Shown: one piece after another, positions 3,301 through 63,954 of the stretch | Layout: every line of letters starts with the position of its first letter | How positions within the stretch are numbered: the stretch's first letter is position 1 | DNA from: Octopus sinensis | Taxonomy: Eukaryota | Length of the DNA stretch: 64,000 bases | Direction: 5' to 3' | NCBI RefSeq assembly: GCF_006345805.1 | Contig: NC_043011.1 | Span: forward strand, 65,546,464-65,610,463 | Position numbers and translations under genes: made by a program | Notes under the pieces: generated by a model | Seen by the model: the letters and a program-made list of their open reading frames with translations, nothing else | Told to the model about the DNA's origin: nothing | Database searches by the model: none

Positions 3301-3313
3301 CAGTTTTGTGAAG
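3301..3313 (-). CDS. Putative 13-nt microexon, paralogue 0 of the small Cys-peptide family
   Basis: Minus strand: tatttatcttatag|cttcacaaaactg|gtaaat. Phase 1 to phase 2. After the signal exon it reads T-S-Q-N-TG, where TG would complete Cys17 as in paralogue 1. Confidence 0.5.
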
Positions 3314-3661
3314 CTATAAGATAAATAGCCTCCCCGCCCAATTCAAGATACTATTCAATTATCAATTCGTACCGAATAAGAATAGGGTTTTCAAACACCA
3401 AAAACCTTTCATAAATCATCTCTTCACATAACAATAATGAATATAATAACGTTGATATTATTAACACTAACAATTCTTTGAACAAGAATAACAACAGTAT
3501 TAGGATTTCTGATATAAATTCGAATCACATTCGTTTCCTTTGCAGTAATTCTAAGACTAGAAACTCTGTTTATCAAAGTAAAATTCCTTCCGGTGCTTAG
3601 GTCTTTTTTTACATAGTTGTCCAAACGAATACGTAACCATTATTCTACATTTAAAAACATG

Positions 3662-3901
3662 TTCCTTTTCGAGCCATGCCAGGCCCATAAGGGCTGGTTT
3701 CCCAGTTTCAGTGGCGTAGAAATTCCCCAACTCCACGGGACGCCGGTCCGTCGCAGCGTTACTCATTTTTGCCAGTGGACTGGAGCAATGTGAAATGAAG
3801 TGTTTTGCTCAAGAACACAACGTATCGCCCGGGCCAGGAATCGAAACCAAAACCTTACGATCATGAGTTCAACACCCTAACCACTAAGCGACGCACCTCC
3901 A
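3662..3901 (-). mobile_element. tRNA-derived SINE
   Basis: Minus-strand head with A-box-like gcttagtgg and B-box ggtttcgattcc, followed by gttcttgagcaaaacactt. Its 3' part resembles 30560-30605. Confidence 0.8.
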
Positions 3902-4744
3902 CACTCTACATTTAGAGATATGAATACACATAACAACATTCACAGCCCTGTCACATCAGTCAAGTTGCCAGATCATGCTTACAGCTTCGACCGTTTAGAC
4001 TTGAGATTGATCAAATCTGGCTGGACCCAAAATTCTAATCTAAGAGCATTGACTTTTGGTCGTGGTAGGGAAATGCACGAGAATGTGTACGATAACAAAG
4101 ACAAAAAGAAAATGGAGAAAATGCTACACAATTACAAATACAAACAATGAAATATTACAACGGGTGCCTTTCGACCACAAAAGCGGAATCAGTTTAGCTG
4201 GCGTATTTAGAATGAAAGACTTGAAGGAAGAACATAGGAGATGAACATGAAGGAAGGAAGTCTTGAGAAAAGAATACAAGTGATGCTTCGGCTGTCGAGC
4301 CAAGAAAGAACATGCTCGGACGAAGACAGGTCACGTGTAAGAAAAAGCGAGACGTAGGGGGAAGAGGGATCGAAGAATAAGGGGTAAAAGAGAAAGAGAG
4401 GAAATCAAAGGGATATAGGGAATGGTACAAGGGAAATGAACGAGTATAGAAAGAAAGGGGATCACGGAAAGAGAAGGTCAAGGAATGTAAGTAAGGGGGA
4501 GCGAGGAACAGAAAGAAGGAACATAGATAAATAGATAAATAGAGAGAGAGACAGAGACAGAGATAATGGTTGATAATAGTTAGATAAATATGAAAGAAAA
4601 GAAAATAATATATGAATAAATATAGTTGTTTTATGAGAATTCTACAATTTAAATGCTAGGATAATAGATGCCCTCATTGATATAACTATCGCCATTTCAG
4701 ATACTAATACCTATTCTAATAAAATACTTAACATATGTACTTAC

Positions 4745-4781
4745 TAAAAAGCATTAGAAAAATAAATAGAGAGGATTTCAT
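4745..4781 (-). CDS. Putative first coding (signal-peptide) exon, paralogue 0: MKSSLFIFLMLF + 1 nt
   Basis: ATG at 4781, hydrophobic run and phase-1 GTAAGT donor at 4744. The upstream tgtctgcagacgacttc (acceptor-like) is shared with 47540-47560, and intronic 4940-4990 resembles 47660-47700. Confidence 0.62.
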
Positions 4782-5243
4782 TATGCCGTTGTCTCAGGTA
4801 GAAACCATCAGGTTTGCTCAGATTGAAGTCGTCTGCAGACAATTTTTTCTGAAATAAATATGCACGAAGTAACACATGTTTTGCTCTCAATATAGGTATA
4901 CGCTAATTGCTCTTAATATTTCTTCATATAGAAATGTTTGACATGGAATATTCTATATGTGACTTTTGAAGAATTTATGTACATATTCATATTTCTTGTG
5001 TCATCCTGGTCATTACTGAGAATTGACGCGCCTGCGCGATCGCATTCAAGTCTCATTATGTGTGATGTATCACAATCCAGGCTTACGAATTGAATAAGTC
5101 GTTTGTGAAACCTATTTTATTGACTGTATCCCTGTAGCTAATAGTGTTGATAGGTCAGGGTCATCCCGTCCTCGGGATTATAGAATGTATAAAACAGATG
5201 TATTCATATATATATATATATATATATATATATATATATATAT

Positions 5244-6080
5244 ATACTAAGCAATTAAGGGTTTAGCAACGAATTGCCTCACCACACACCGAATTTAGAA
5301 ATAGCAGCCAAAGAGTTATAGCTATTCTTTCTACTAAAAGGGAGATCTCAGTAAAAACACAGCACTTGAATGGCAAACACAGACAGGTAAGAGAGAATGA
5401 AATGACGGCAATCTATCATACAATTTTAAGTCACCTACTTGGTGTAATTAATAATTATTCCAAATTAATTAATTTCACCCTATATTATTACTGATAACCA
5501 TATTTCATCCCAGTAAATGACCGCAGCATCTTGTCTTGGCTACACGCGGGTGGGAAGGGGCTGGTGACACAAACTTTCATTCACACTTTGAATTTGGTGA
5601 TACTGGTAACGGCTTTTAGCTCGCTCTGATACTGAGTTGAGTTGATGCCTTCTAGTATCTCGAAATTTAATATACAATTATCCATAATTGTAGTGTCCTA
5701 CGCTGATGAGAAAAGAAGTTGGGTAAGATATAATTATCTAATTCTTATGCTTTCCTAAAACTTAATTTCGAAACGTACGTCCGTAGGTGAGTTAAAATTG
5801 TATGATAGATTGCCGTCATTTCATTCTCTCTTACCCGTCTGTGTTTGCCATTCAAGTGCTGTGTTTTTACTGAGATCTTCCTTTTAGTAGAAAGAATAGC
5901 TATAACTCTTTGACTGCTATTTCTAAATTCGGTGTGTGGTGAGGCAATTCGTTGCTAAACCCTTAATTGCTTAGTATTACTTAAATTTTCCTCGAATGAG
6001 GCTTTTACATGCCGAAATCTACTTGGTGTAATTAATAATTATTCCGAATTAATTAATTTCACCCTATATTGTTACTGATA
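5244..6080. mobile_element. Non-autonomous foldback element between (TA)n tracts, carrying a hammerhead (Penelope pLTR / retrozyme-like)
   Basis: 195-bp inverted arms at 5244-5438 and 5783-5977, plus a 62-bp direct repeat at 5435-5496 and 6019-6080. No ORF. Confidence 0.75.
5697..5787 (+). ncRNA. Type I hammerhead ribozyme, canonical core
   Basis: Stem I CCTACG (5697-5702) pairs with CGTAGG (5782-5787). CTGATGA at 5703-5709, long stem II GAAA...TTTC, GAAA at 5770-5773, palindromic stem III CGTACG, and GTC cleavage triplet at 5779-5781. Confidence 0.85.
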
Positions 6081-61477: not shown

Positions 61478-61989
61478 CTAAACGGAAATCACAGAGCGAA
61501 TTGCTGCAGAGGTGAATGTTGCGTTTCGTTAATGCTATCATGGAAAGATAGAGACTATGTTGCGAAATAGTTGGGTTCCAACTGATTAAATATATTAGAA
61601 AATTAACGATAAATGTAATTAACTTAAAAAATTAACGATAAATGCAATTACTTTCAAGAGAGTAGATTGCACAATCCTTATGTAATACCAGCCGCTTTTT
61701 TTTCAGATTAAAATGTTTTTAATAGTTAATTCATCTTGTTTTTATATTTATGAATGCGCTAATCTTGATATATGTTTGTGGCAGTCATGTAAAACTTGGA
61801 ATGATATTCAAATTATTTTTACAGACCTACGATATTTACCCAACAATTACCAATGGGTATATTACAGTTATGTAATTCTAGGGCTGATTTAATTATCAGC
61901 AAAGGTGTTAGGCCTTGGTGTCCTTAATGAAAAATGTCTAAGGGATCTGCTTTACAATGAGTAAATATTGTGAAATAATATTATAATCA

Positions 61990-62720
61990 TGGCTACAATA
62001 AAAGATTTTATCAAAAGGCTCCCGGCGTATTCGAAATATTGACCCTGTACAGCAATATACCGATCAGAGCGTTACTACAACTTTTATAGTTCGGCCTGGA
62101 ATTTGTTTTCGCAAGCGAGTCGAAGACATTCTGCAATTCACTCTGGACCTTGACATCGGTGTTGAAACGGTGACATTTGAGCTGGTGTCTGCAGGTGCTA
62201 AGTCTGGCGAATAGTGCGGGTGCAGAAAACATACCATGTTGTTTTTGGTGAGAAACTACGGATGAGGAGAAGCTCGGGTAAGAATCCAGTTATTCGCGCT
62301 CCAGTGATCCAGTCGTTTCCATCGCATGTTTCTCCCTCAAACGTTTTAAAACGTTGCAGATCAACTCTTGATTGACGACTTGGCCTTGACAGACGCATTT
62401 TCTATGCACAATGCTAAATTTCCAGGGAAGAATTTCTTGGCAGGTCTTCCAGGTCTTTCATCGTCTTCCAGGCACGTTCTTCTGCTATTGAAGCATCCGT
62501 ATCAGTCGAAATATTGCTTCTTCAAAATTAGCTTGCCGAACTCTGCTCAGTATCTTTGTAGCAGACTTTCCAAGTTTAACGCAAAATTTCATTTTGGCTA
62601 TTTCTTCCTGTCCATGACAAAATCGCAGACACCAGCATGCATGTGATCCCAAAATCTCATATTTCACAACTTGCGAAGTAAACACAGAAATGCCATTCGG
62701 CACACTGCCCCATGAAGGTC
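61990..62720 (-). mobile_element. Internally deleted, decayed mariner
   Basis: MKFCVKLGKSAT N-terminus and HRFNTDVKVQSELQNVFDSL C-terminal fragment. Confidence 0.75.
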
Positions 62721-62893
62721 ACCACTAGCTCTCACTGCGCACACAACTGCCCGCTTTTATATGCCGGTGCCTTACAAACCTTGGTCGGGAACTTGTTGAT
62801 ACAACATTGTAACATTTTAATACATACTGATAGAAGTGGAATCGAAGACAACGCATTAATTTTTGATACAATTCTTAATATGAAATCGCATAC

Positions 62894-62914
62894 CTGTCTA
62901 GCTCGAGAGTTGTA
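62894..62914 (-). CDS. 21-nt microexon, paralogue 2 (YNSRARQ)
   Basis: ttttgcttttcttttacag|tacaactctcgagctagacag|gtatgc; phase 0-0. Confidence 0.58.
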
Positions 62915-63869
62915 CTGTAAAAGAAAAGCAAAATGCAAGTGTCAGGAATATGAATGCCACATGAGTGTTTTTAATTTATCTTCATAAATATATCTTAATT
63001 AGGATGATCATTACGAAATATCATTATTATATTTTTGTGATAAGTGATAGTGCTGGCAAAGAACTAAATTTGTTGTCACCTGTGTTAATTAATTGCTGTA
63101 GTTGATGAAATATGATGGTAGTAAACTGCTACAAGCTGTTAATTCCATCTTACCGATACGAAACATAGCGTTAGTGATATATTTCGAAAATGAATTATTA
63201 TCTTTTAACCGCCAGTAAATTATGGTTTTTGGATTGAAGCGCTTTCCTCTCAATGAAAAAGATCATTAGAAATAGTTTTGTTACAGGAAAGCGGTTTTAC
63301 TTTAGGTATACACCACCTTAAACGTGAGTCACTCTTTAATAACGTTAAGTCAATTTGTGGTCCCTGTAGCATAACATACTTCAAACCTCTGCATCATAAT
63401 ATGTTACAAAAGATTTTCATGAAAAGTAGGAATTGAAAATATTTTCAAATTTTCGTCACTATATATATTTGACGGCGTAGCATGTTTATGGACAATCTGC
63501 TTACTATGACCCTAGTCTTTAAAATCTATGTAGAATGTCTGAGACGTCGACAGTGTATTTATGATAATTATATTCACAACCACGTCTCTCGGATGCAATG
63601 GTAAGTTAACTTTATAATTTTATCATAACAACAGCATAGATGCACAAACCATATATTGGATAACAGTGCTATTTAAAATCTCGTTAAGAATATCAATTTA
63701 AGCATGCAGACTGTATACTCCGCAAGTAAACATTATAGTGTATTTCTCACAATGAATCGACAGATATTTCAAAATGAGTTAACAGATATCAGATAACAAA
63801 ATGACAGCTTTTCTTCAGGAGTTACATTTATTAAAAATGAAACATAAATACGTATAAATTACAATGTAC

Positions 63870-63954
63870 CTCGCAATGGTGAGCAATTCTAAACATCAGG
63901 TAACATGTAGCGTTGTCGTCAGGTGTAAAACATTGTAAGAGGTCAGCATAACCA
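63870..63954 (-). CDS. 85-nt Cys-rich exon, paralogue 2: (C)GYADLLQCFTPDDNATCYLMFRIAHHCE
   Basis: ttgtgttattccag acceptor and GTACAT donor; phase 2 to 0; shares Y,L,C,D,CY,FR,AH,C with the paralogue 1 exon. Confidence 0.72.

Follow-up and report, generated by a model that had tools for sequence, protein, structure and literature searches.

A tandem, Octopus-restricted family of five-exon genes encoding small six-cysteine precursors with a signal-peptide-like N-terminus and a hydrophobic tail

We analysed a 64,000-nucleotide stretch of the Octopus sinensis genome (the window; C15:65546464-65610463 of the 2.72-Gb assembly, AT-rich with 64% A+T). It holds one complete gene, P1, the 3' part of a second gene, P2, and the first exon of a third, P0, all members of a tandem gene family restricted to Octopus. 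The three copies are named from right to left and all are transcribed from the minus strand. Their features are as follows, in window coordinates, with numbers below 1 lying left of the window and numbers above 64,000 right of it.

47544..47750, minus strand: P1 promoter or 5' block, with ACATGTGTTACAT, a TATA-like TATTTAAG and TGCAGATGACTTC, about 40-100 nt upstream of the ATG
47465..47504, minus strand: P1 exon 1, 40 nt, ending in phase 1; MKNFAFFMLLLVI, N-terminal part of the predicted signal peptide
40160..40265, minus strand: P1 exon 2, 106 nt; GGEAKNVSMWKTCKDKAKPNCSVELTPYLNKENDC(G), end of the predicted signal peptide, NVS sequon, conserved Trp and Cys1-3
31595..31682, minus strand: P1 exon 3 (the Cys exon), 88 nt; SYRHFLHCAARIDDTECYELFRVAHPCHN, Cys4-6
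29664..29681, minus strand: P1 exon 4, an 18-nt symmetric microexon; SSRQEN linker
29248..29572, minus strand: conserved non-coding block in intron 4 of P1, corresponding to 61679-62002 in P2; 66-74% identity in five paralogues
28819..28893, minus strand: P1 exon 5, terminal, 75 nt; VATHSTAFLSALVVTLLILNKVQV and the stop codon, hydrophobic C-terminal tail
28731..28736, minus strand: P1 polyadenylation signal AATAAA, 82 nt past the P1 stop
85820-85859 and 84625-84730, minus strand: P2 exons 1 and 2, outside the window
63870..63954, minus strand: P2 exon 3, 85 nt; (S)GYADLLQCFTPDDNATCYLMFRIAHHCE
62894..62914, minus strand: P2 exon 4, a 21-nt microexon; YNSRARQ
52751..52813, minus strand: P2 exon 5, terminal, 63 nt; ITYQPPTNLSALLVTFLMSQ and the stop codon, homologous to the terminal exons of four paralogues
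52733-52738, minus strand: P2 AATAAA, 12 nt past the P2 stop
4825..5029, minus strand: P0 promoter block, homologous to the P1 block
4745..4781, minus strand: P0 exon 1, 37 nt; MKSSLFIFLMLF
-6868..-6763, -10885..-10801, -13124..-13104 and about -14155, minus strand: remaining P0 exons, left of the window

The gene plan of the family comprises five coding exons, of 37-40 nt (exon 1), 97-106 nt (exon 2), 85-100 nt (exon 3) and 18-27 nt (exon 4), followed by the terminal exon 5, and the predicted precursors have 98-124 aa and six Cys. The P1 exons are of 40, 106, 88, 18 and 75 nt, giving a product of 108 aa. Five paralogues, P1, P2, P0 and two others, could be assembled on this plan, and the exon positions, phases and splice sites are conserved in five to twelve paralogues. 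In five paralogues exon 1 starts with a conserved ATG, continues with 12-13 codons for mostly hydrophobic residues and ends at a phase-1 GTAAGT donor. Because exon 1 ends in phase 1 and two bases must precede the Cys exon, every copy requires an exon of length 3n+1 between them. A phase-constrained exon scan detected homologous 97-106-nt exons in P0 and in one other paralogue, and tblastn then matched every copy. The codon split between exons 2 and 3 is GG/T (Gly) in P1, AG/T (Ser) in P2 and AA/G (Lys) in P0. The promoter block of P1 is homologous to the block upstream of P0 exon 1 and to blocks of three further paralogues.

Exon 4 keeps its acceptor, its donor and a length of 18 or 21 nt, divisible by three, in five paralogues, and its sequence varies freely; it is a genuine microexon. 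Reading exon 4 through as a terminal exon was ruled out, the indels among paralogues not being multiples of three and the GT donor always being kept. The terminal exon of P1 was located by tblastn with the tail of the O. bimaculoides orthologue (72% identity) and was aligned in five paralogues; terminal exons homologous to the P1 and P2 tails are found in three more paralogues. A provisional terminal exon placed in the intron-4 block (P1 29380-29397, VCENK and a stop codon) proved wrong, since the orthologue tail and the real exon at 28819-28893 contradict it. O. bimaculoides lends no support to the same block as an alternative 3' exon: in isoform X2 of its gene LOC128249931 the alternative exon comes after exon 5 rather than in intron 4. 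In other paralogues the block (~320 nt) is found at -13526..-13166, -42799..-42488 and -70586..-70398, and it holds a conserved TAG/GTCTG(C/T) and ATTAAA. It is not the terminal exon; it may act in splicing or regulation, or may be an alternative exon that is not used.

The twelve exon-3 peptides were built into a profile and compared with 1.84 billion representative proteins; four proteins matched, all from Octopus, with expectation values (E) from 1e-12 to 7e-5. The full-length profile reached an E of 1.7e-34. Three of the matches are from O. bimaculoides: XP_052830545.1 (LOC128249944), XP_052830539.1 (LOC128249941) and XP_052830516.1 (LOC128249931, isoforms XP_052830515/6.1). The fourth, CAI9735849.1 from O. 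vulgaris, is a model fusing several copies and contains one O. sinensis exon-3 peptide at 28/28 residues. P1 is 76-77% identical over its full length to XP_052830545.1 ("uncharacterized protein LOC128249944"), whose layout is the signal peptide, exon 2, exon 3, SSRQEK (an 18-nt exon) and then VTVHSSVVLSALAVTLLILNKVQV. Searched against the O. sinensis genome, this protein matches P1 at exon 2 (E=1e-12), exon 3 (E=1.8e-10) and exon 5. When the RefSeq proteins were mapped on their loci, all coding exons had AG/GT borders and the following lengths.

LOC128249944: 40/106/85/18/75 nt
LOC128249931: 103/100/85/27/60 nt
LOC128249941: 40/103/88/27/117 nt

Among the O. sinensis paralogues, L033 pairs with LOC128249941 and L028 with LOC128249931. 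The O. bimaculoides genes and the O. vulgaris model are true homologues, named only "uncharacterized" or "hypothetical", with no domain, literature or function attached. Since the annotation of the sister species already has such "uncharacterized protein" models, the genes of the window are new members of an existing, undescribed family. Word-index protein searches with a 52-aa peptide and an 89-aa model gave no match and are uninformative, because the 77%-identical orthologue is in that collection; the queries share many 5-residue words with a protein that the same search returned later, and its negatives on short proteins do not indicate absence. RefSeq gives several isoforms per gene. In LOC128249931 isoform X2 exon 5 is skipped and the protein ends in a 3-codon exon further downstream (...SSVKPFA); therefore soluble forms are likely for some genes.

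The O. bimaculoides genes lie in a single tandem cluster (CM046618.1, 50.00-50.09 Mb), with at least 8 head-to-tail copies in ~76 kb. This cluster is approximately three to five times more compact than that of O. sinensis: P1 spans 18.7 kb (28819-47504) versus 7.3 kb for its orthologue (L038 10001-17255), and the gene spacing is ~30-45 kb in O. sinensis versus ~9 kb in O. bimaculoides. Introns and intergenic DNA are expanded several-fold in the O. sinensis cluster.

The Cys exons of P1 (31595-31682) and P2 (63870-63954) are homologous together with their flanks, and 61679-63993 is collinear with 29248-31720 at 67-77% identity, which indicates a segmental tandem duplication. With tblastn over 100 kb to the left and to the right of the window, further copies of the Cys exon were detected. 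In every one the polypyrimidine-AG acceptor falls at an identical codon position, and the GTAAGT donor follows 1-2 codons past the last Cys. Genome-wide, the pattern TGYTAY-N18-CAYNNNTGY-N3-6-GTAAGT gave 16 matches, versus 8 for the reversed pattern used as control, and 10 of the 16 fall on C15 at 65.31-65.92 Mb, in both orientations, within 615 kb around the window. All ten of these translate to (G/S)Y-x5-C-x8-CY-x6-H-x-C. The family is thus far beyond chance expectation. The pattern matches on C1, C2, C3, C7, C17 and C30 are chance; the two that might have been members gave E>1 when scored with the family profile. From the six-frame translation, profile searches recovered two further, divergent copies along with several wrecks. 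Combining the pattern, tblastn and profile searches, the cluster has at least 13 members on one chromosome arm, three of which touch the window. Twelve paralogous exon-3 copies keep the AG/GT borders and the positions of Y, C, CY, H and C.

An earlier sequence-only reading of this DNA had proposed a tandem, diverging family of small Cys-rich products with signal peptides, hidden in repeat DNA. The paralogues bear this out: the genes lie among long interspersed nuclear element (LINE) and microsatellite DNA, and additional copies are present past both edges of the window. Its guess of a cephalopod was also right. The family is not absent from databases, since the O. bimaculoides RefSeq and O. 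vulgaris models exist under "uncharacterized" or "hypothetical" names.

In the right flank, outside the window, a wreck at about 104080-108700 has an exon 2 with a GC donor and an exon 3 without the CY motif, and exon-2 fragments broken by stop codons lie near 94100 and 148870. Such degenerate copies are evidence for gene death within the cluster. Weak exon-2-like matches were also seen at G000:C15:65815812-65815919 and G000:C10872:9220-9327 (33% identity to XP_052830545.1 residues 20-55, E ~2), the latter on an unplaced scaffold; the two may be further divergent copies or an assembly duplicate.

The encoded proteins share a Cys domain of ~55 residues, W-x2-C-x7-C-x13-C-x8-C-x8-C-x9-C. The general pattern found in the family is W-x2-C-x7-C-x12-14-C, then (G/S)Y-x5-C-x8-C(Y/H)-x6-H-x-C, the linker microexon and a hydrophobic tail. 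M1, the W, six Cys and one His are invariant in nine full-length sequences with ~30% overall identity. In all copies the N-terminus is built like a signal peptide with n, h and c regions: M-K/x, next 10-12 hydrophobic residues, then small residues at -3 and -1 near residue 17 (GEA, ATA, TSA, VTA), recognised by eye following the von Heijne rule. P1 and XP_052830545.1 share an N-x-S/T sequon at residue 19.

Glycosylphosphatidylinositol (GPI) attachment signals consist of a small omega residue and an omega+2 site, a polar spacer of ~8-12 residues and 10-20 hydrophobic residues near the C-terminus. The C-terminus of the octopus proteins has small residues, a polar spacer of ~10 residues and then 12-15 hydrophobic residues at or near the end. 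The P1 tail reads ...CH-N-S-S-RQENVATHST-AFLSALVVTLLIL-NKVQV, and P0 ends exactly at the hydrophobic stretch (...VILSALVITLLI). The best 12-residue Kyte-Doolittle mean is 1.7-3.1, and 0-6 residues follow the stretch in six of seven proteins. At the level of architecture, then, both features of the GPI class are present, the signal peptide for the endoplasmic reticulum (ER) and the C-terminal layout of omega site, spacer and hydrophobic segment; the SSRQEN microexon of P1 is likely the omega-site region.

AlphaFold2, run with the O. bimaculoides orthologue and exon-level fragments as input, predicted the Cys domain as all-helical with four to five short helices (predicted local distance difference test 82-93 in the full-length run and, with only the domain modelled, 81 overall). 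Pfam gave no family at E<=10 for nine sequences, a PDB sequence search gave no relative, and Foldseek against PDB with the full-length and domain-only models gave nothing significant (best E 2.2 and 4.8). A literature search on the accession and LOC numbers and on the topic returned no paper on the family.

Comparison of P1 with its orthologue showed the reading frame, all splice sites and the six Cys intact, and the single length difference is one codon. The ratio of nonsynonymous to synonymous substitution rates (dN/dS) is 1.25 for L028 and its orthologue LOC128249931, 0.44 for L033 and its orthologue, and 0.63-1.08 for full-length paralogue pairs. Between P1 and P2, exon 3 has 57% identity, lower than the adjacent introns (67-77%). 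The sample is too small to separate positive from relaxed selection. The pattern across these alignments is one of an invariant disulfide scaffold, freely or adaptively changing surfaces and birth-and-death turnover.

A separate observation concerns the paralogues L026 and L027 (C15:65.308 and 65.386 Mb; locus ~1450-3040). Their exon 3 differs at 27 of 85 positions (32%) and the sequence just upstream at ~18%, and in the downstream intron only 30 of 1481 positions differ (2%), with a sharp switch at the exon 3 donor. Positive selection as the cause of the exon-3 divergence was rejected: because the upstream flank is divergent too, a recombination or conversion breakpoint at the donor explains the data better, suggesting gene conversion or recombination between paralogues.

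We consider it probable that these genes encode small surface proteins that evolve fast, are restricted to Octopus and carry a GPI anchor, and that some of the genes also have secreted isoforms. The precursor would enter the ER and its signal peptide would be cut near residue 17; the ~55-residue W/six-Cys domain would fold into four or five short helices with three disulfides. A GPI anchor would then replace the hydrophobic tail at an omega site of small residues where exons 3 and 4 meet (N-S-S in P1), so that a helical module of ~60 residues stays attached to the outside of the cell membrane. Some paralogues would use an alternative 3' exon to produce a tail-less, secreted form. Birth-and-death duplication, together with near-neutral to accelerated change around an invariant Cys scaffold, suggests that the six-Cys module may be a binding or recognition unit with fast-changing partners (immune, reproductive or chemosensory).

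Several points weigh against this interpretation. GPI anchoring is deduced from the sequence architecture, the predicted gene models from sequence comparison, and the structure model from a shallow alignment; no protein from the O. sinensis genome was found in the protein collection searched. The P2 tail is weakly hydrophobic, and LOC128249941 X1 has 22 residues past the hydrophobic stretch and is more transmembrane-like. Between P1 and its orthologue dN/dS is 1.03 (dN 0.122, dS 0.119) and the exon identity of 86-94% is about the same as that of the flanking introns (75-91%), so constraint is weak outside the scaffold residues.

The C-terminal stretch could instead be a true transmembrane anchor, making the products type I proteins with a minimal cytoplasmic tail, which we regard as unlikely, though it is the main alternative. 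The tail is predicted as a single helix of ~18 residues, K-V-Q-V follows the stretch in P1 and LOC128249944, and the extension of LOC128249941 X1 includes KK; set against this, P0 has nothing beyond the stretch, L030, P2 and LOC128249931 have only 2-6 residues past it, the cores are only 12-15 residues long, and the ~10-residue polar spacer with small residues (N-S-S, S-T-A, S-G-A) is the classical layout of a GPI signal. More doubtful still is a reading in which the main products are secreted in soluble form, as venom, mucus or signalling proteins, with the tail a removed propeptide or mostly spliced out. Five paralogues and three O. bimaculoides genes keep the tail exon, which has its own AATAAA, and no dibasic or other processing site is conserved before the tail, although the annotated tail-less isoform X2 of LOC128249931, the linker variants permitted by the symmetric exon 4 and the combination of a conserved signal with a variable mature region, typical of secreted effectors, would suit secretion. 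The hydrophobic tail points to membrane anchoring through GPI more than to the simple secretion proposed by the sequence-only reading, although at least one O. bimaculoides gene has a tail-less isoform. That the array consists of decaying, unexpressed duplicates evolving neutrally we find scarcely credible. The dN/dS values of 1.03 and 1.25 against LOC128249944 and LOC128249931, the similar identity of exons and introns and the clear wrecks in the cluster (the GC-donor copy with lost CY near 104-108 kb, the exon-2 fragments near 94.1 and 148.9 kb) would agree with decay, yet five exons, ten splice sites and a frame of 107-108 codons are intact in both species, with only one in-frame 3-nt length difference, against numerous indels in the flanking introns. 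The invariance of six Cys, W and H at ~30% overall identity, the dN/dS of 0.44 for L033 and the several RefSeq isoforms per gene also stand against decay.

The gene structure given by that reading, secreted four-Cys peptides of 35-52 aa assembled mostly from microexons with junctions GTGATTG/ATGACGAATG/TAGTTAC and resembling schistosome micro-exon genes (MEGs), is highly improbable. Every exon that it listed is present at its coordinates, with AG/GT borders, compatible phases and the translation as given, there is one true microexon per gene, and the signal-peptide exon exists. Six of the exons (47465-47504, 31595-31682, 29664-29681, 63870-63954, 62894-62914 and 4745-4781) are real, as paralogue conservation and the O. 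bimaculoides orthologue indicate. The other two, of 10 nt at 44062-44071 and of 13 nt at 3301-3313, are mutually non-homologous and unsupported. The P1 site aligns to window coordinate -3850 in P0, a position with a GC donor, and two other paralogues lack the site. The same P1 intron offers 36 AG-N10-GT sites, 35 open in the needed frame and 5 ending in TG, and 579 candidates of length 3n+1; the 10-nt and 13-nt microexons appear to be chance picks. Every copy, like the three RefSeq genes, has the conserved 97-106-nt exon 2 and the terminal exon in the same phases.

For P1, four of the five exon positions had been caught loosely, three of them exactly, and two real exons, 40160-40265 and 28819-28893, had been missed. 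Because two microexons were invented and two real exons overlooked, the product was mis-sized and mis-classified. The peptides were incomplete, none having a stop codon, and the actual products are the 98-124-aa precursors with six Cys. In the proposed frame C-x7-C-x8-C-x9-C the first Cys is wrong and the remainder, C-x8-C-x9-C, is carried by exon 3. The "Cys17" suspected to lie inside the signal peptide is an artefact, because P1 exon 2 ends in GG/T (Gly). The label microexon-built does not apply: among five coding exons there is a single microexon (18-27 nt, ~6-8% of the coding sequence). The case shows how easily microexons are invented from AG...GT pairs once a larger exon is overlooked.

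Among known systems, schistosome MEGs have most of their coding sequence in many symmetric microexons of 6-36 nt. The octopus genes resemble them in having small, fast-evolving products with a predicted signal peptide and a symmetric microexon that could be skipped in frame, but the microexon is one of five exons (18-27 of ~300-375 coding nt) and there is no sequence similarity, and the likeness fails on the defining feature. MEG products are small and secreted; all octopus copies have a signal-peptide-like N-terminus, and also a hydrophobic tail that argues for anchoring. Proteins of the Ly6/uPAR family have a signal peptide, a disulfide-rich module of 60-80 residues over two exons and a GPI-type C-terminal signal; they form tandem clusters, evolve fast and include soluble and tethered members. 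Their LU domains adopt an all-beta three-finger fold with 8-10 Cys and a C-terminal CCxxxxCN, and match Pfam UPAR_LY6 or Toxin_TOLIP. On paper the octopus family works alike (signal, module, GPI-type tail, tandem arrangement, fast evolution), but its domain is predicted to be all-helical, with six Cys in another spacing and no CC or CN motif. With no Pfam match at E<=10 and no Foldseek match, the octopus family is not an LU member.

Conotoxin-type superfamilies are similar in their conserved signal exon, large introns, tandem birth and death, and a mature region that diverges as fast as introns or faster around an invariant Cys framework. The octopus genes differ in having no cleavable propeptide, a larger mature part (~60 aa) and a hydrophobic tail. 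CHCH/twin-Cx9C proteins carry two C-x9-C motifs on antiparallel helices and are cytosolic or mitochondrial, without a signal peptide; the octopus proteins have spacings of x7, x13, x8, x8 and x9, a secretory signal peptide and no Pfam match. As a very speculative proposal, with little chance of proving right, the proteins could be an Octopus-specific, structurally new all-helical six-Cys module, GPI-displayed or released through alternative 3' exons, whose diversified members serve as modulators or ligands of one of the expanded octopus receptor families, a convergent counterpart of the Ly6/Lynx "prototoxins" with an unrelated fold.

With this analysis a cephalopod genome without family proteins in the collections searched gains three genes with corrected structures and a cluster of 13 or more copies. 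It defines an Octopus-restricted family without a Pfam domain, structural relative or literature, and offers for it a testable layout of signal peptide, six-Cys helical module and GPI-type tail. Families that are lineage-specific, evolve fast and act at the surface or after secretion are prime candidates for cephalopod innovation in immunity, reproduction, chemosensation and venom.

The DNA around the genes is rich in repeats. LINE-type retrotransposon open reading frame (ORF) fragments lie at 7132-14309 and 22827-24619, between the P1 3' end and the P0 promoter. They include an Exo_endo_phos_2 endonuclease and an RVT_1 reverse transcriptase (RT) at 7947-10995 on the plus strand, broken RT pieces at 11636-13048 on the minus strand and another RT at 22827-23825. 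Inverted repeats of 2.0 kb with 95% identity (16339-18307 vs 24983-26990) bracket the RT ORF at 22827-24619; they may have arisen by palindromic duplication, or be the long inverted ends of a transposon. A shorter inverted pair (33792-34354 vs 34682-35247) has 0.56 kb and 97.5% identity. A microsatellite-like repeat of ~200 bp with 88-98% identity (1483-1681, 22271-22513, 39487-39666, 45852-46166, 32371-32717) recurs in introns and intergenic DNA and, together with a separate tandem array at 593-1083, dominates the self-comparisons of the window.

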